The notes: a model not told the origin generated them from the letters alone. 64,000 nucleotides of DNA from Fimbriosthenelais zetlandica (GCA_977030845.1 OZ365116.1:16864001-16928000), one strand, 5' to 3'. Shown: positions 15,501-25,185, counted from the stretch's first letter. Numbers and translations: made by a program.

Positions 15501-18500
15501 GTCTCTATTTTCTTATCAAATTGCATTATTTGTATTTGGGTGGGTGGATGTTTGAATGTGTAGGCGTGCAGGGGGAGGTGGAGCGGGAGGGATAGAGTTA
15601 CATATCACAAGAAAATTCAGGCTAAGGACAACGCTGACCGCAGAAATACCAGACTGGTATCGCAGTGCAAGCGTGCAATATTTGAACAAGGCAAGCTGAG
15701 GCACGTAATACACATAGAGAAATGACCTTGATTTGACGCCCTTATCATAGGTGCCTGTCCTGATAGAAGATAACATGAGAGAATTAAGACACGTGACCTC
15801 AACAAGTACATAATGATACAGGCACGTGCTCACCATAAAGTGTCCATTACAAGAATAAAAGGTTAAACTGATGCCATTATTATAGTGTAATGCACCCATT
15901 AACTTCCTTTCTTTACATAAACGTTTCAATCCATCTTCTTGGTTTTGGAAAAATGTGACGCAGTAGGCCTATGAAAGGAAGATTCTTAATTATAACCATA
16001 GATATCATATCTTGCTATATGTCTATGTTATAACTGCTTCAAGTCTTAAAATCTGAAATAGGTTTTCAGCAATTTTAAAGCCTTTAAGACTGAATTTGTT
16101 CCTTTAAAATATTTCACATTTGCTCTTCCATTTTATAGAGAGAATACAAGTATTATACTCTACTTATAAACGTGTCTTTACGAGGAAGAGAAACACTGTG
16201 GATCGGGATCTTTATAAGGATTGTGCTCATGCATAAATATTAAATGGAGCTAAAGGGATTAACATCCTTTTTCTCATCCCATTTATTCATTTTGCACCAG
16301 TGTTGGCATTTATCACTGAGAGTACTTCCACACACCAAACTAAATCATGCAGGAATATGACATTTTCGGGGACTCTGGGACTTTCTCTTCCTGATATCAT
16401 GTTGAACACAAACTTCCCACTCTTCTAAACCACAATATTAGTCATCACATATATGAGAGTTAGAGCACAATGCATTCACACTTTGGTCGACCTCAAGAAT
16501 TCAAAATCAAAGAGTATAAAAAATTCCTGGTTTGCACACCTTCCACAGGGATCTACCATTTACCGTTAGTCAAACATGCTTCTTCTTTACTAGGGATGTA
16601 GGGCATATAATACTTTTTTTGCTTACTCATCAATTATATTTAAAAAAAGACTGAACCTACCTAGCCATGACTTTCTCCTACGTAATAGCTTCTTCTTCTT
16701 CAGCAACTTGGATGGGGTATCCTCCCTTGACTTGGATGAACATGACTTGACTGGGTGGCAGACATTGAAGTGACTATTGACATGACGTGCTAGTCCACCT
16801 TGAGTGGTGAAGCGTTGACCACAGCCGTGGACAATACACTGGAAGGGTTTATCTCCAGCGTGAGCCACAATATGACGCTCTATCCAGGACTGAGATGACG
16901 ATGGTCTGTTGTAAACTTTACAAGTTTTCCACAAGCACACATACTTGACGTCCTTGTCTTTATTATCACTGGTATTAGTGCCCGTCTTGATTTGTGGGTC
17001 AACATGTCGTGTACGGATATGATCCATGAGATCACCAGCAGGTAGACTCAGTCCACACTCACTCCAGTCACACCTGGCCGTGCTCACCTGCTCACCTGAG
17101 CCACTCGCTGCTTGAGACGAGCTGGAGGACGAGGAAGAAGAGGACGAGGACGAGGTACTCGTGGCTCGAGCAAAAATACCACTGGCACTGGTGCTAGCTT
17201 TACACAAGGCTGTCCTTGCCTTGCCAGTGGAGGGACCACTGTGTGGCACTTTACATATATTATTACTGCCATATTTAATGGTAGAAATACTCCATTCACA
17301 CTTGACCCTGTCACTCGTCACTGAGGTAGCTGTACTAATATTGGTTTTACTATTATCAATACTGAAGTTTGTGCCGTTGGTTATTAAGGGACAGCCGTCC
17401 TGGATCCCGGGCTCCGTCTTAATGTCAATGATCCTATCTGTTGGGGTGTTGGTACCTGATGAGTTTGAGGAGATACTGTAGGGCTGGTTACTATGAGATG
17501 AGCTGCTCAGAGGAGGTGTACATGAGCGGGAGGTGTCCGGGGAGATGGGACCTAGTAAGGTGGACTGTACAGTACTACATACATCCGTGTGCTGGTTACA
17601 TAAGGCACTGGCGGTCGGACAGTCCTCCACATGATTATCATGCTCATCTCCTGATTTACTGCAATACAAAAGAAGAGAAAATAAAGTAATTGGCGCTCAA
17701 CGGTTACAAGACATCTGGAAATAAAACACTATGAGAATGCTGAATACCAGTACGTGCTTGGATATAATATATGCATAAAAGATCACGCTACTAATAAGTT
17801 CTTTTAGGCATTTTAAATCTTGTAGAATTGAAAGGAAACAGTGGGACATTAATATAAAATCTTGGCAGTACAATTGCACCAGGGATCTTTGTCAGTTGTC
17901 CAATACACATCTCTCTCAGACTCAATACACAACTCAACACCCCAAACATTTATAGACTGATTTACAAAGCCGGTTGGAATATGATCACATTAAGAAGATT
18001 TTGATCCCTGATCAGAGATAGAATGATTTTTGAGGTTGAATAAAAGGTAACACATCCATCAACTGGAGATGGAGCAGACTGAGCTTTTATCTACTGGGAG
18101 ACCATGATGTTATTGTTCTGCCTCCGCTCGCAGCCCTGTGCCTGTGGAGAATGCAGCGAGTCCAGTTTCACCGTGCAATACTGAATACACAACCAAGCCA
18201 CAGACAAAAAAAGACACACACCTCTCTTCAACACTCTGTTTATCCTTCCTAGTGGATCTTCTCTTCTTAGGAGGCGACTCTAGACGACTCGATGACTTTT
18301 CTGTTCGCGTTCTATTGTTATTGTTCAAAGATCGCGATCGGAGAGTGGGTATGGATAGGGACAGGGTGGCTGGGATTCTGGTCGACACCCCATTTACTCG
18401 ACTGTCTTTAGATGTTTTACACCGTTTTACGTCCATAGGTCGGCATGGTTTTCCATTACAGCGACAACCTTGTATCATGCCATTTTTCTTGCATGTCCCG

Positions 18501-18586
18501 TTCGGCGGAGATTGAGTAACATCTGTGATATCTTGGCTATCCTTCGAGCTATTATCGTCTTCTCTCATGCCTCTGTCCGCCGCCAT
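6596..18586 (-). CDS. AEBP2: Zinc finger protein AEBP2/jing ortholog (PRC2 accessory subunit), 568 aa
   Basis: Exons 18222..18586, 16661..17658, 12648..12775, 6957..7024, 6596..6743 total 1707 nt; all introns are GT-AG with compatible phases. Three C2H2 fingers: CDWSEC..HIRTRH, CLWKTC..HIVAH, CIVHGC..HVNSH. A basic KR patch (KKKKLLRRRKS) joins VKTEDFFDSRIMETLRHQL, then [29 protein letters not shown]. This matches my recollection of the AEBP2 C-terminus (RPHDFFD...[29 protein letters not shown]). ATG taken at 18586 because an in-frame stop lies upstream; the ORF-track start at 18595 is GTG. Confidence 0.95.
8547..11321 (+). CDS. 924-aa single-exon protein nested antisense in AEBP2 intron 3; mostly low-complexity, with a C-terminal Tudor-knot/chromo-barrel-like motif
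   Basis: Uninterrupted 2775-nt ORF with aaccATGT context and a plausible 5'UTR acceptor AG at 8530-8531. AATAAA near 11845 and 12066. Ser/Thr/Gly/Lys-rich with poly-T and poly-G runs and NLS-like patches (KPRKRQRR, KRKMSRSK, RSRSPKRKS). C-terminal LVAEIT...VKVHFMGQDHCYDRWLRPSEL resembles the MRG15/KAT8-type IHYxGWNxxWDEWV motif. Confidence 0.87.
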   Translation: MSRLPDEVQTLIDCLGETRTLSDWLIYGDEGKVTLVLQWEAEAGSGKERKSNTTPQLLQGVGGKHLEGEGGGEEGKTACGGLQNKAAAALVRCKGLQAGQNQEGNIVRQNNMTGTITGTTSTCTTSTTTTTTTPRINNSILAHLQRGCQFLCDVGMADFRTNSDESYSAFVSSRQHNRDSEHLRSPAEQLTDEEGMTSGAESVYTDCSPSPTLSQSSAHRPQLLLLDKDKRTGDHLNPSQTSPSTSKPRKRQRRHNKAQIDKQTSISMPSLLTSGLDSNSSDNNSDQVKKGKTKWTGTVVALLKRKMSRSKASDSSGSTTVQKTPPAAKNDPWVQRWSTASRSRSPKRKSVPNVQISSDSEVQRPLSEKDRELVGGVSPHTMAGVPTVPSSPRVKPFMDTRSELEVKRSRPKEDFHRGSMSVGSPDADGMITVVADVHRQFSLEQNKALRSRTPTRDSSLTSGGGGGGSGSIERVLSIKAEQDKETSNTDGTDLMGGDNDRSKAPGTDSIKSNSEPLNKNQEQVKPEAGPSPSGALSTKGVNKSCPGSNGSQRYLTTETNGVKAESTESLTSNNDRDKSSDSAIAYPSPTDLFAAQEDSLSLSDITVSSEVTTGPPVDLLCRSSTSEDIDHMDSASNHLQAVDGGGGGGGSSSSGNNPSTSELSEIRHLLMGVIKDYQTETWVKQHNTNSSTRQDVVKRQEKNGPEAGTQGADDTSGMECTTPGLKPNSDCQPRNEFVNNVHKNTEGNVGLDIKTKAPKTNKEKGPERLIVPKNTSITANPKLKSSPNKEKAQGSNNNSILSDKTSKPSSAGPTLEVLDKFTCSRGRMNELRPKLKRFWEEKLGERVRMLTVLDAKRANPKAKPRLLVAEITDFNVVTQDDPVNKDNSTAHCVVKVHFMGQDHCYDRWLRPSELAKAAFSQRTF
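13460..13570. repeat. Purine-rich low-complexity tract (polypyrimidine on the AEBP2 sense strand)
   Basis: About 110 nt almost entirely A/G on the + strand, ending next to a minus-strand CAG at 13455-13453. Confidence 0.6.
14024..14240. mobile_element. Decayed non-autonomous hAT-type MITE (about 217 bp) in AEBP2 intron 2
   Basis: Degenerate terminal inverted repeats: CAGGAATCCACACG versus the reverse complement of the right end, CATGGCTCCAAACG (10/14). Flanking 8-mers CCTAATAA / ACTAATAT (6/8) look like an 8-bp target-site duplication. About six internal (CT)GGCCAG/CTGGGCC motifs occur in both orientations. Confidence 0.5.
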
Positions 18587-19045
18587 CTTGGGCACTCTGC
18601 CACAGACGTCATCAACATCTGTGCTTGGGATTCCCCTACGTCATCATTTTCAGCGTGGGGGTTTCCTCAAGACCCAGAATCGGCGAATGTCAACATGGTT
18701 CGTGCTGGAAGTGCGATGATAAAAGGTGGGTAAAACATTATTGCGCGTCCTCCGATTGCGAATTTGTGCATAGAGTATATATCAACTATGTCTTTGCTGT
18801 TAAAATGCCGGGAAAGTAATATATTCTGTGCTTTACTTCGTGGAATATACGAGTGCAAAGAAAGTCTAGACCGGCAATGGCCAATGCGGTATACAGCCTA
18901 CAGGCCTGAGTAGGCGCAGGCTAATGTATTTTGGAATGTGTATTCCACTAATTAATCCACCCATTATTTCAGGTGTGACATCTTATTTGGCAGACTGAGG
19001 TCCCCTGGTATTTTTGGATAGGTCTGTTTGTAAATAATCAGAACA
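18587..19045. promoter_or_regulatory. Probable bidirectional promoter and 5'UTRs between AEBP2 and the NEF1-like gene
   Basis: Divergent start codons at 18586 (-) and 19046 (+), 460 nt apart. The interval is CpG-containing with CCAAT near 18881 and CRE-like TGACGT motifs on the minus strand near 18606-18643. Confidence 0.6.
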
Positions 19046-22000
19046 ATGGCTGAGGAAACACTGGGAGCTGGGGCTGAACGCATTCATGAATGGTTGGCTG
19101 AAAGCAGCCTGGCATTTGCAGGTAAGTCACTGAGACTGCTCTATCTCTATTAAATGGTGGTTTAAACCATCATGTCCATCTCCAAAGGAAAATAGTCTAC
19201 ATACATAAATTTTTAGGAAAATACTTGTGAATCTGGAGAACAGGTTTGTTTGTTCCTCTCTGGAATGAATTACAGAATGAGATCATTGAAACTGTTTAGG
19301 CTAGCTTCTCCAAAAGGCAAAAAAAAATATTCACATCCCCCTCATATCACATTTTGATTCCAGCTGCAAGTGAGTTTCCATTCGGCCCATCTCCCCTGGC
19401 TTTACCTGACTTTACCTTTGATGAGGATCCCCCCACTCCACCAAGCTCTAGTGACAATGAAGATGATGGCCACCCAGCCCTCAGATCACACCCACTGGAA
19501 CCTTTACTCACTGACAGATTCAGAGCCAATACCAGCCCGGAGCATGTACCCAGTCCTAAAACGTCAGACAAGTGGGCGCCTGAACAGCCCTTCCTGTATA
19601 ATGGACGCCTGCTATTAGTGTGCTTCCCAGGCCTAATGCTGGTCCTCTCTCTTGGAGGCGATTTGTAAGCCAGCTCTTTTTATATCATCCAAATGATTTC
19701 TGACCATTTCTGACCAAAATATTTATATCTTTCACCATCTTTGTCATTATATTTCTAATAAATCCTGTTAATAATAATTTCAGATTAATAACTGTGGTTA
19801 CAATAGGATCCATGCTGGTGCATCTACTTCACTCAAGTGGAGAACCACGCAAGTAAGTTTCCACTCACCTGTAGACCAAAGTCTTTCGGATATGATTCTA
19901 TAAATAATATCTAATTGAATTTCATTTCTTTCCAGGGCATTCATAACGTATATCTGTACCTTCATGTGTTCCCAAATTATTGTTGTGTACTCTGCCTTCC
20001 CACTGTTATGGTAAGTCTTCTTTGGCATTTCCTTAGCAAAAAGCTGTACACTTTAAATGTGAAATTTTGTCAACTAATAAATACAAAATTCTCTTAATGC
20101 TACACATGATTTTGTAATTACTATTTCAGGCACACCATCCTAAACTTGTTTCTGATAGGAATGCTTAACAGTTTCACTGTGTTGACCGGGGCTTGGGGTC
20201 TGCTGTTTTTCTCTTATTTTAGAGTAGGAGAAGCGGAGCTAACTAAAGTAAGATATATTTCTTGTCTTATTAATTTCTTTTTCTGATCCAATATTATCTG
20301 TTTTTTTAGAACAAAGAAACGTTTCTTTTCAACGTATATTTTCTGATCTATCTACAGATTATAGAGACGTCACTGTTTAGTTTCTATCCTGGAGTGAACG
20401 TCATTCTGCTCACGTGGATCATAGCCGCGGCTCTCTCACCCATCATTGCCCCCTATGCTCTATTGTCTATAGGGTAAGTCACTACTTCATCTTCATCATA
20501 AAATCTTCCACGAATAATAGTTCGGTAGAATTTATTTCATCCTGTTAATATGTTGAGAAGTTCTATTTATGTGACACTTTTTTCCCTCGTAGGTTTATGA
20601 TTCTTCAGCTGTTTATGACCCCGGCTCAATCTTCATTTTGGAAAGTGAAGGGTAAAGATGGCGAGGTGTGTAATGTGTTAGACAGTAATCAGATCGGTGC
20701 CATGGCGCTGGCTTACACAGTCCTACCACCAGGCGTCTACATGTACCTTACATTCATCCATGGTCATCAGTCCGTCATATCTGTGTCATTCATGGTACGT
20801 TCACTTCATTAATATAGAGCATGTTTGATATTAAAAAACTCGACATCCAGTGGAAATCATGCATCTCCATTCTGCATCATTTATACTGCCAAATATCATT
20901 AAAATCATTCATTGTCTTTGCAGGTGGAGTTCATTTTTCTTGGGTCGCTGAGTTCATTTCTTGCCACCTTAATGAACTTGAGAGAGTTTTTGGAAGTAGC
21001 TGGCATGGACTATATGTATCTTGTTCGTGCACGATGGGCTCTTGGTATAACAGCCTTGGTTCTGCTGAACGGAGTTCTCCACAAATACGGTTTCAGTATC
21101 TCATTGTTACCGTGGCTGGCTCTGGGGCTGGCCCTTCATACTGGATATGGATTCATTACCAGTCACAGAAAATACAGGGTGCGTCGCATTTAGTGTTTCC
21201 CACATGTAATGTCATTATTGAAACGTTTCATTTGCACCAAAGAACAATATAAATGTCATCTATTATATTTCAGGCATGGAGTTTAGTTGCTGCTCTGCTC
21301 CTTATAGGCTTGTATGGTCTTATGTTCACACGTCTACCATGGAGACTAGAGTATCCTTTTCAAACAGGGTTCATCCGCTTTGGAAAATCATGGAATTTAT
21401 TTGTTTTCAAGGTCTTTGTAAATGTCAAATCTTGTCTGAATATTTGAATGTTCCTTCCTTTCCTTAATAACAATCAGAATGTATTTGGAGGCCAGTCATT
21501 TGCACATCAACTATCTACTGCTCCTCATGTTTCTCAACACGCTTCTATGTGTTGTGTGTATCTATATCGCTGCCCACGGTCCTCGAGAATCTCTAGGCTT
21601 TACTGTCGTTCTCCAGTCACTTGGTAAGATAGTTCTCAATTTTTTATTTCGTCTCATTCGTGCTGTCTATTCCTTTAGAAAACACTTTCAATATAATGAG
21701 CTTCGATGTACATTGAACATCATTAATCCGTTGTGTCCTCTTTGAATATCTGCACATTTCTCTCATTCATTCAATTTAAATTTCAGTTTTTGTTGCTTGT
21801 GAAAAATTCCTATGGTACGATGGACTCTACTCAAACTCTTTGCTCCTCATATCAACCGTCTTTGCAGTCTATGCACTTCTTCGGTGGGTGTCATTTCCAG
21901 TTTGTATGTTCTCTGCAGCTAAAATTTAATATCATTATGAAGTTTACGTCCTGGAATCACTTCACCACTTCAGATTTTCTCTTTCAGTTTGCAGCATGCT

Positions 22001-24190
22001 CACAAATATTCGTGGACCTCTTCCTGGCTGTCTGTGGCCCTGCACCTCACTAAAGTGAGCACGTGTCTGCGTGCCATCCTACCAGGTCCGCCCGCTGATA
22101 ATCCTCTCTCACATATAGTGTATGAAGAGTCGACCACATTTATACTCGCCTTGGTATTCCTCAAGGGCTTCCTCTTTGAAAACCAAAGTGTCTCCTTCAA
22201 TAGGGTAGGTTTTCTTGATTTTTCCATGTCAAACGTTTTCTACAAAATTATTATATTAAGATCTTGAAATGACTGATGTGATTAGTTTTAAACTATTATT
22301 CTGTATTTTCCAGTGGCTGATCTATATGGCAGCAGCCGTCACTTCCCTCGTTCCTTCCATGTCAGCTTTACTCTCCAATATACTCTTTATAACTATCGGC
22401 CGTACTCCAATATTCTCAGACCTCACAGGTGAGTAACATACTCTCATCTATTACTCAATTTGTCTGTGTTGACTCCTTCCCCTGAGTCCTTATTAATTTA
22501 TTTTCTCTGTTTGACAGCCTTGGGTCTGCTCATGACTGCCTGTCTGTCCATCAAGCTGAGCCTTCAGGGTAGTAAGCAGAGTGCGTGGCTTGGGGTGGGT
22601 CATGTTGGTCCTACAGCTATAGTCACTGCTGTGGTTCTCTTCTTCCTTAAACCTGAGGCTGCTCCGACATGGTTAGTCAATCACTTCACAAGTATATACT
22701 GTTAGATCTGTCTTGTGTCTACCAGACATTCATTTGTGATATATTTTTCAGGGAGGACATCAATAAGTGGGTGCTCATTGCTACTCTGGTTAGTGCTTTT
22801 CTCATGGCTCCTATCATCTCTAAAACCAAGTCCTCCCTTCTCCTCTGTCTCACGGGCTGTGCAGTAGGCCTACCTGTCGGTGCCTCTTGTACTTTTTGGG
22901 TACGTTTCTTCATTTTTTCCCTGATGAATTTCTATTTCCTTGTCAACTTTCATTTACAAAGCGTCCGATATTATCATGTTAGTAATTCCTCTTTACTTTA
23001 CAGTTGTTCCCAGGAGACACTGAAGCAATCGTGTATATCTTGTATGGAGTTATTGTGGCGAGTTTGTCCTGCAAAGCTGTGCTTCTCTGGCGGAACTTAA
23101 AAGGCATGGAAAAGAAGCTCTACGTCCTGTAAGTAAACCAGATTAAATTGACTGATTTTCATGAATATTGGGAGGAAAATTGGTAAAGTCCTAGGCGATG
23201 TGATTTTACATAAATGATTTTGTTTTTTAGGACGGGTTGCAGTATGATGTGCAGTGTGGTGCTCCTATATCAGGATTCTCTATCAGGGATGGATGACTCA
23301 GACCTCCCTCCTGGTCTACTGGCCACCACTGCCTCATCTATCATCACAGCTTTTCTCTTCAAGGTTCATTCACTTCAAGAAAAGGTACAAATATTCCCAT
23401 CCACATGATGATTCTATATCTATACAAGTGAGAATACACTTCCCTCAGGGGAATAAGGGGATCCTTGTGTCACATTTTATTAATTTGTTTCAGCCATTGG
23501 ATCTGACGTCGCCTAACAAGGAGCGGTCATGGCTAGCTCTGGTAGGAAACGTCTCATGTATTACTGGTTTCCTTCTCACCTGTCTCCAGAGCAAGGCTGA
23601 ACCCTGGGAAATCTGGGTAAGATTTACATTCAATAATCCAATTTCCAGTTGCAGCTTTTTCTGCTGGAGTTGTATCCTCTTTCCTGTGATATCTTGATAG
23701 ATAATTGTAGTTGAATGGTTGTTTAGATGTTGAGTTATTTTTATTTGACATTGTTTTAATGTCATTTCAGTACGTCATCGCCTGCTCGTTGCTCCTGCTG
23801 CTGCAGCGTGACAGTGTGTTATTCCGCAGTCTGGGTGGTCATAATAACAGTGCTCCTATGTTAATCATCATAACTCTCATCCTCCTCTTCTCCTCCACTG
23901 CTAACAATGCTCTATTCGCGGATAATGTGTCCATCGTACGTAAGTTGGCAGCCACAGTAGAACTAGTACTGCTATGTGCCACCTTGCCCCTCTACTTTGT
24001 ATTTATCACCACTCTCTGGTCAAACAAATTCTATATATCAGACAGACTGGTTGTGTTCATCACACCACTCAATGTGTTTTTCTTGATATTTGGTTCGAGT
24101 TATCAAGTTTGGGCACTGGCTACTTATGCGTTGGGGGTGGGGTACTGGCTAATGACATACAGGTTACCCCTACAGAGAGATTACATCTAG
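19046..24190 (+). CDS. Multi-pass membrane protein, NO EXINE FORMATION 1 (NEF1)-like, 1001 aa
   Basis: 19 exons: 19046..19121, 19364..19664, 19784..19852, 19936..20010, 20130..20247, 20358..20473, 20593..20794, 20924..21178, 21274..21368, 21478..21623, 21787..21883, 21988..22204, 22314..22428, 22518..22671, 22752..22899, 23004..23128, 23231..23384, 23494..23616, 23771..24190. Total 3006 nt, all GT-AG, phases compatible. Roughly 25-30 hydrophobic stretches by eye. Colinear motifs resemble recalled Arabidopsis NEF1: PFLYNGRLLLVCFPGLMLVLSLGG ~ SFAYNGRIAIALVPCAAFLLDLGG; WLALVGNVS ~ WMPSVGNVA; LLLLLQRDSVLF ~ LLLLNQDSDLL; terminal RDYI* ~ LRYI*. Confidence is for the gene model; the NEF1 assignment is about 0.75. 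Confidence 0.88.
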
Positions 24191-25185
24191 GTGGGTGCAG
24201 TATTTATTGTATAGTTTGTGAGAGCATTGTTGTAAAGACGGTGTATAATAAGATTATTATATTGGTGTCAATAATTGAGTATTCTAACTTATTATAATGT
24301 TTACCTAAATAAATATTTTACTGTAATAAAAAAATATCATAGCCTACATTCTGTCAGCTTTCTTCATACGTACACAATTTCGGGGTAATATTTAATCTTG
24401 TTCCAAAATATGTTTATTTCATCTCCATAGAAGATAAATCCGACGATACATATTGAGCGAGCATGTTCTGACGAGTTACTCAGAGCCTCTCAATCACTCA
24501 GATCTCAATGTTCAGGTGAAGGAAAATGACGCGAGATAAAATATCATCTCTCATTGTCAACATTGTAACACTAAAGTGTCTAACAGTAAATCAATTAAAC
24601 AGAATTTACACAACATTTTTGAAGAAGACGTTTCATGTTGGATTTAACATAAATATTAGGTTTGGTTTTTTCAGTACTTTTCAAAATTTGCAAAGGCTGC
24701 TTTTCAAATCTACAAGACCTTCAATGGTTTCTTGATTATCTGCCCCAGGAAACGTCCTTTCATAACACCTTAATATTAATTTTAAAGAACAAATGCCCAA
24801 CGAGGCACAGAAACATTTTGATTACCTTCATAATTTCCAAGGCAAACCTCTGTTTCGTTAATTTTTTCTTCTATTGCATCCTCGAAAAAATGAGCTGGAC
24901 AATAATGAAAAACAAGCATGAAATAATTCTCAAAATGTGAGGAAATCCTGTGGTTAGAACCGAAATCTCGGCATAGCAAAATGAAGAATAATTCTATCAA
25001 ATTAAAGTATAAATGTATCACAATAACTAACATGTACTTCATAAACGTCAGTTTTTCATCAGAACATCCACAATAAAAACAACACATATTCACCTAGATT
25101 GGACGTATGACACCCAAAATAGAATAGTCATGTCATATAAAGTTAGAGGCAGAAACCACTAGGGAGCAGCCCTAGTCAGCGAGTG

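Follow-up and report, generated by a model that had tools for sequence, protein, structure and literature searches.

In this work, a stretch of 64,000 nucleotides (nt) from Fimbriosthenelais zetlandica (GCA_977030845.1 OZ365116.1:16864001-16928000, called the window below and numbered from its first letter) was analysed with respect to the 19-exon gene at positions 19046-24190 of its plus strand. We find that the gene is real and of animal origin, and that it belongs to a protein family already held in public databases as uncharacterised, most probably the family of the plant protein NEF1 (NO EXINE FORMATION 1, At5g13390), and it is not a demonstrated new system. A preliminary description of this DNA had presented it as a candidate for an "undescribed system", and this is not supported in that form, the animal proteins being already in the databases under uncharacterised entries. 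The whole reading favoured here, to which we assign a probability of about 0.72, is that of a vertically inherited, functional gene which belongs to a lophotrochozoan protein family, represents with it the animal branch of NEF1, and for whose product a role in lipid handling is proposed.

Orthologs in molluscs, Owenia and Lingula

A family hidden Markov model (HMM) was built from 13 full-length relatives, all of them uncharacterised proteins of 900-1130 amino acids (aa) from molluscs, Owenia and Lingula. The spliced window protein matched it in hmmsearch with 736 bits (E 5e-225) from HMM position 38 to 947, corresponding to residues 88-991. Pairwise identity between the window protein and its relatives was in the range of 27-31%, and the best BLASTP identity was obtained with the Owenia protein P0024 (31% over 962 aa, E 2e-120). 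When six relatives were aligned to the window by tblastn, the matches were colinear from 19570 to 24187. Furthermore, when the last exon was compared by phmmer with 1.84 billion cluster representatives, there were 56 matches (best E 5e-30), many of which lie at the C-termini of 900-1130-aa proteins. The named matches are all lophotrochozoan, and they are labelled "uncharacterized" or "hypothetical" in Haliotis, Patella, Babylonia, Biomphalaria, Batillaria, Nucella, Ostrea, Mactra, a cuttlefish, the annelid Owenia and the brachiopod Lingula; a characterised animal family, which the preliminary description had considered as the outcome that would speak against it, was not among these best matches. 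Judged by its sequence, the window gene is the ortholog of these uncharacterised 900-1130-aa proteins, which are known from molluscs and from one annelid (Owenia) and one brachiopod (Lingula).

The conserved positions of the family are well preserved in the window protein. In an alignment of 27 sequences, it keeps 25 of the 28 invariant columns and 32 of the 37 near-invariant ones, departing at three invariant columns only (E77D, S128T and S330I). Invariant positions of the family with a polar or charged side chain that fall inside a helix or close to one are E/D77, N139, E160, E168, R308, E435, K484, D826 and E874 in the Haliotis numbering. Because so many of the invariant residues are retained, the window gene looks functional and not decayed.

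Probable relationship to NEF1

NEF1 is described as an unknown integral membrane protein of plastids that is needed for the primexine and exine and for lipid accumulation in tapetal plastids, and homologs were reported in Physcomitrella and Selaginella (PMC3220415) as well as in Chlorella (PMC4928020). The literature searches brought up neither a study of NEF1 homologs in animals nor one of NEF1 biochemistry. We consider it very probable that the eukaryotic NEF1 family has its animal branch in the proteins described above, on the basis of language-model neighbours and fold matches and not of sequence alignment.

In the ESM Atlas feature search, which covers 7.7 million clusters, two clusters named "No exine formation 1" took ranks 1 and 2 both for the Haliotis protein P0008 and for the Owenia protein P0024, which are only 26% identical to each other. 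The scores were 0.88 (181 shared features) and 0.75 (156) for P0008, and 0.86 (173) and 0.81 (165) for P0024, for which a chlorophyte cluster came third. The representatives of the two named clusters are 1111 and 1134 aa long, and the clusters are eukaryotic, mostly Streptophyta. The confidence placed in NEF1 homology comes from the fact that a single family, named beforehand, topped 7.7 million clusters for two queries.

The fold searches point in the same direction. The AlphaFold2 model of Haliotis P0008, made with the 27-sequence alignment, contains about 30 helices (predicted local distance difference test, pLDDT, 77; predicted template modelling score, pTM, 0.58). When it was compared by Foldseek with the cluster representatives of AlphaFold DB, the top two matches were mollusc-like, and they were followed by near full-length matches to proteins of about 720-1280 aa with E 1.5e-20, 8e-18, 2e-13, 3e-11, 9e-11 and 7e-9, a template modelling (TM) score of 0.41-0.63 and an identity of 12-19%. 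These proteins are unnamed, so NEF1 membership is not read from them. The next class, bacterial DUF2339, followed at E >0.01 and a TM score of about 0.15.

Several results weigh against the link to NEF1. The best scores of P0008 and P0024 (0.88 and 0.86) fall under the line of 0.9, below which a language-model score counts as a lead only by the method's own rule. Moreover, the last exon of the window gene (139 aa) scored 0.94 with 183 features against unrelated-looking small bacterial membrane proteins, which means that such feature counts can come from generic membrane-protein character. A named plant protein was not among the 56 phmmer matches of the last exon, and word-index searches with the 13-sequence profile, with Haliotis residues 45-235 and with Owenia residues 40-230 returned animal family members only; in the case of the profile, 8000 low-complexity candidates crowded the result, and some sequences of the query alignment itself were not recovered. 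Finally, the organisms behind the fold matches are unconfirmed: we take A4S6I8 to be from Ostreococcus, and A0A6G1C859 and A0A6J0PMZ0 are presumably angiosperm proteins, in each case going by the accession range.

These points would be expected if the animal family were unrelated to NEF1, that is, if it were an orphan restricted to lophotrochozoans that resembles NEF1 only as long all-helical membrane proteins generically resemble each other. The lack of any plant match in the phmmer and word-index searches, the scores of 0.86-0.88 next to an equally high one for a fragment against unrelated bacterial proteins, and a structure-based identity of merely 12-15% to the presumed non-animal matches all agree with it. 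On the other hand, it does not account for a family named beforehand reaching the first and second rank of 7.7 million clusters with two such dissimilar queries, nor for Foldseek matches to proteins of NEF1-like length with E 1e-18 to 7e-9 and TM 0.5-0.63 over 900-1100 aligned columns, far above the DUF2339 class. We therefore regard an unrelated orphan family as improbable and prefer membership in the NEF1 family. The NEF1 homology put forward in the preliminary description is accordingly kept in part, in that NEF1 is the nearest named language-model family and near-full-length fold matches to unnamed proteins exist; the colinear motif matches to NEF1 that it had listed are putative.

Gene structure, neighbourhood and inheritance

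The window was read from 18900 to 24400, and the coding sequence was assembled by frame and splice signals, with the splice junctions set by homology or by splice signals. The frame is stop-free through all 19 exons, from the ATG at 19046 (context ACAATGG) to the TAG at 24188-24190, and gives a product of 995 aa. All 18 introns are of the GT-AG type with a pyrimidine-rich acceptor, and they are 80-242 nt long. The complete and intact 19-exon gene for a protein of about 1000 aa that had been announced from the first inspection is borne out by this 995-codon frame, by the 18 introns and by the 736-bit family match. The exons and the putative polyadenylation signal are as follows.

Exon 1, 19046..19121, plus strand: 76 nt, with the start codon in ACAATGG and donor GTAAGT; the least certain exon, called from its start and splice signals, and like its intron without a counterpart in Lingula.
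Exon 2, 19364..19664, plus strand: Pro/acidic tail, FLYNGR motif and first transmembrane helix; the frame runs on from exon 1, Owenia and Lingula tblastn matches span 19570-19665, and the following intron is common to Lingula, Owenia and Lottia.
Exon 3, 19784..19852, plus strand: 69 nt; length and phase as in Lingula, Owenia and Lottia.
Exon 4, 19936..20010, plus strand: 75 nt; length as in Lingula and Lottia; tblastn matches.
Exon 5, 20130..20247, plus strand: 118 nt; length as in Lingula and Lottia; tblastn matches.
Exon 6, 20358..20473, plus strand: 116 nt; IETSLF..YP motif with invariant E168, L171, F172 and P176; length as in Lingula, Owenia and Lottia; HMM alignment.
Exon 7, 20593..20794, plus strand: 202 nt; TPAQSSFW, which is the family motif P..SSFK with invariant S218 and F219 kept; length as in Lingula, Owenia and Lottia.
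Exon 8, 20924..21178, plus strand: 255 nt, the sum of two Lingula exons (79 and 176 nt) that an additional intron of Lingula and Lottia separates; tblastn E down to 7e-19.
Exon 9, 21274..21350, plus strand: 77 nt, length as in Lingula; donor GTATCC; tblastn match from the cephalopod protein P0007.
Exon 10, 21478..21623, plus strand: 146 nt; tblastn matches; following intron common to Lingula.
Exon 11, 21787..21883, plus strand: 97 nt, CEKFL motif with invariant E435 and L438; donor GTGGGT.
Exon 12, 21988..22204, plus strand: 217 nt, acceptor TTTCAG; Owenia tblastn match spans 21977-22222.
Exon 13, 22314..22428, plus strand: 115 nt, length as in Lingula.
Exon 14, 22518..22671, plus strand: 154 nt; set by frame and GT-AG borders; Lingula intron in the same phase, 6 alignment columns off.
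Exon 15, 22752..22899, plus strand: 148 nt; frame continuity; Owenia tblastn match.
Exon 16, 23004..23128, plus strand: 125 nt; following intron common to Lingula.
Exon 17, 23231..23384, plus strand: 154 nt; intron position common to Lingula.
Exon 18, 23494..23616, plus strand: 123 nt, W..LVGNV motif; tblastn matches from four species; following intron common to Lingula.
Exon 19, 23771..24190, plus strand: last 139 codons and TAG; phmmer matches to the C-termini of relatives.
Putative polyadenylation signal AATAAA, 24308..24313, plus strand: first AATAAA past the stop codon, 118 nt downstream.

Two junctions were chosen over alternatives. The junction 21883/21988 between exons 11 and 12 adds 11 bits to the HMM score, restores a near-invariant R-L pair and gives the Lingula length (97 nt) and intron phase, and the exon 17 donor at 23384 (GTACAA) is preferred by 16 bits over the alternative donor at 23363.

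The exons were mapped exactly in the Lingula gene and partly in those of Lottia and Owenia. The Lingula gene likewise has 19 exons, and the lengths of 69, 75, 118, 116, 202, 77 and 115 nt are identical to those in the window. In the protein alignment, at least 14 of the 18 window introns match Lingula in column (within one) and in phase. With its later junction exon 11 also has the Lingula length, so that one further intron is probably common, and two more introns have the same phase as in Lingula but lie 2-6 columns off in a poorly aligned stretch. Six of the seven introns mapped in Lottia and all five mapped in Owenia are common to the window gene.

The neighbourhood of the gene is also conserved in part. 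Upstream, and head-to-head with the NEF1-like gene, lies an exon of AEBP2, which is a cofactor of Polycomb repressive complex 2 (PRC2):

AEBP2 zinc-finger exon, 16626..17696, minus strand: match to human AEBP2 with E 1.8e-33 (phmmer, PDB sequences).

The same head-to-head arrangement with AEBP2 (PF26014) was found in Lingula (AEBP2 at L005 1-9263 on the minus strand, family gene from 10001 on the plus strand) and in the scallop Mizuhopecten (L008 1-8309 minus, 10001 plus). It was not found in Owenia or Lottia, the upstream neighbour in Aplysia is without a Pfam record, and tblastx of the Lingula flanks against the window gave no common flank sequence. The pair of AEBP2 and the NEF1-like gene may represent an old common bidirectional promoter. 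Between the AEBP2 zinc-finger exon and the start of the NEF1-like gene, an open frame of 176 aa with many Ser, Lys and Arg residues was observed at 18113-18640 on the minus strand; it is probably the 5' coding exon of AEBP2, in which case the two genes would be separated by no more than about 400 nt.

The family match, the common introns and the AEBP2 neighbour together show vertical inheritance and not contamination. Contamination or recent transfer is excluded, and the window gene is vertically inherited. The preliminary description had argued for this from host-type introns, and the case is now stronger by the introns common to Lingula and by the AEBP2 synteny in Lingula and scallop.

An older transfer has to be weighed separately. 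It could be that the family is related to NEF1 but was acquired by an early lophotrochozoan, or by an earlier animal, through horizontal transfer, with an alga or a plant-like eukaryote as the donor. The distribution looks patchy in this respect, with named matches in lophotrochozoans, and among reviewed proteins none from vertebrates, fly, worm or yeast has the same fold. However, an exon-intron structure and an AEBP2 neighbourhood common across phyla mean that any such transfer would be older than their split, and the 12-15% identity to the presumed non-animal matches fits an old divergence. We consider this origin quite improbable, slightly more so than an orphan family without relation to NEF1, and retain vertical inheritance within an animal branch of NEF1.

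In the Foldseek search of reviewed UniProt, where human, mouse, yeast and Arabidopsis entries are included, no protein with the same fold was found; no search was aimed at the proteomes of fly and nematode. This fits the absence from the main model animals that had been suggested at first. The AlphaFold DB match A0A7D9HGE3 (19% identity) is perhaps cnidarian. Tentatively, and with somewhat less than even confidence, we hypothesize that NEF1, instead of being specific to plants or plastids, belongs as a single branch to an ancient family of eukaryotic membrane proteins with about 30 helices and a fold for which there is no solved counterpart, which would be retained in green plants, algae, several protists, lophotrochozoans and perhaps cnidarians, would have been lost from vertebrates and probably from ecdysozoans, and would handle lipidic or polyprenyl precursors independently of ATP.

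Protein architecture, fold and proposed function

The product is predicted to begin with a Pro/acidic tail of about 100 aa that is disordered, after which come about 30 tightly packed membrane helices with short loops. Residues 1-105 contain 16 Pro, and 19 Asp and Glu against 6 Lys and Arg. Past this tail, the number of hydrophobic segments in the hydropathy profile is 20 with a strict threshold and 29-30 with a relaxed one, in agreement with the tail and the 25-30 segments of the preliminary description. According to the models, a soluble domain is absent from the product, as are an ATP-binding module and any known catalytic one. In Pfam, nothing significant was found with the exon peptides, and the 27 full-length relatives were without a match even at E <=1. 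TgpA_N was considered for one exon and rejected, because its E of 0.005 is far below the family cut-off. An internal repeat was not found by hhalign between the four quarters of the family alignment, where all probabilities were <1%.

The N-terminal half could be modelled alone with pLDDT 86 and pTM 0.77. With either the whole model or this half, Foldseek gave no convincing fold match in PDB and Swiss-Prot, only alpha-solenoid noise at a TM score of about 0.1-0.2. A wide VIA-align search with the same two models reached a best Z of 9.4-9.8, under the noise line for helical bundles (about 13), and its candidates, namely isoprenoid-synthase-fold proteins, the adenylyl cyclase transmembrane domain and DPY19, were rejected as their Z is at noise level. 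The ESM Atlas shape search returned weak DUF2339-like matches only. From these models, the family appears to have a large membrane fold without a convincing solved counterpart and without a Pfam model. Among the AlphaFold DB proteins, A0A6U6IPV7 (1279 aa) and A0A7S0WJN6 (658 aa) have the same fold and carry the automatic name "Dolichol kinase", which could reflect a fusion hinting at polyprenol metabolism, or a misannotation.

Since these animals are without plastids, the core role of the family is probably not specific to plastids. We propose that the protein would act as a carrier, as a scramblase-like protein or in another lipid-handling capacity in an internal or surface membrane, where a hydrophobic precursor would be moved or processed without ATP. 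A lipid-handling role is suggested by the all-membrane build with conserved charges, taken together with the lipid-accumulation defect of nef1. Such an ATP-independent mechanism is ranked first among the roles considered, and even so it is rather doubtful.

Ranked after it is a membrane-embedded enzyme, for example a transferase, that would act on a lipid-linked or polyprenyl substrate instead of carrying it. The invariant acidic and basic residues in or near helices would suit an enzyme, as would the "Dolichol kinase" names of the two same-fold proteins and the repeated matches of model residues 600-800 to isoprenoid-synthase-fold proteins with Z 7-9.8. Those Z values, however, are within the noise for helical bundles (below about 13), the names are automatic, and neither a Pfam enzyme family nor a known membrane-enzyme fold in PDB was matched. 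An enzymatic role is consequently held to be unlikely, and the carrier or scramblase-like role is the one carried forward as a proposal.

Further observations on the family

Second copies were observed in several molluscs: P0085 and P0091 on one Mizuhopecten scaffold, P0096 and P0027 in Ostrea edulis (LOC125674965 and LOC125674968), and P0021 and P0092 in Babylonia. The location of the scallop and oyster copies on the same scaffold or chromosome suggests local duplications. The Owenia ortholog is 25.7 kb long as compared with 5.1 kb in the window, and a 333-aa gene without a Pfam record lies on the opposite strand, by its position inside one intron of this ortholog (L006 27627-28628, minus strand).

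Some database names look wrong. The Mactra antiquata protein KAL4233802.1 (P0014), a member of the family, goes under "Pleckstrin y domain-containing A member 1", and the Lymnaea stagnalis fragment CAL1543050.1 (P0040) has the UniRef name "NADH dehydrogenase subunit 2". Moreover, a 1034-aa relative (P0104) is encoded by one uninterrupted open reading frame on two marine metagenome contigs (L001 1477-4581 and L002 259-3363, both on the plus strand), one of which is a Tara Oceans scaffold. Its identity is 25-28% to the window protein and to all the animal members compared, so it is about equally distant from them. The other mapped family genes, unlike the intronless P0104, are many-introned, with 19 exons where the mapping is complete.

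Significance

The value of this work lies in a useful annotation and in a lead on an uncharacterised large membrane fold, and not in the discovery of a new system. Over some twenty years NEF1 has reportedly figured as a "novel plant protein" and as an "unknown plastid integral membrane protein" that the pollen wall requires. If the relationship is true, orthologs in animals that have no plastids argue that the core function of NEF1 is a general membrane or lipid process and not one of the plastid. It would mean that animal systems, together with conservation maps of the acidic and basic residues (E, R, K and D) that are invariant in the family, become available for the study of NEF1 function. 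If, moreover, the family is as ancient as hypothesized above, its conserved job could come to light in animals that secrete a cuticle, a shell or a tube.

Comparison with known systems

The nearest known relatives of the window gene are Haliotis rufescens LOC124140327 (XP_048239676.1), Owenia fusiformis CAH1798390.1, Lingula anatina LOC106174833 (XP_013411980.1) and Lottia gigantea LOTGIDRAFT_230266, and further relatives occur in Patella, Biomphalaria, Aplysia, Pecten, Ostrea and a cuttlefish. With these proteins it has in common a full-length colinear homology, the length class and the motifs F.YN.R, E..LF..YP, P..SSFK, CE..L and PLN...GSSY. It differs from them in that the window protein is divergent and its Pro/acidic tail is longer and is encoded with one extra 5' intron.

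Bacterial proteins of the DUF2339 (PF10101) and DUF2157 (PF09925) families are likewise very long, all-helical and many-pass, with function unknown. They recur as the nearest Pfam-bearing neighbours in language-model features, in Foldseek (E 0.02-0.2) and in shape (TM 0.34-0.43, depending on the query). However, this likeness is weak (TM <0.5), and no family member matches these Pfam models at E <=1. It is possible, as far as the models go, that they are a very distant bacterial counterpart.

NEF1 resembles the animal family in its size (about 1100 aa) and in its all-membrane build, and it is the nearest named language-model neighbour of two family members. On the other hand, NEF1 is described as a plastid integral membrane protein that acts in the tapetum (PMC3220415), whereas animals have neither plastids nor exine, and the animal members are about 100-150 aa shorter.

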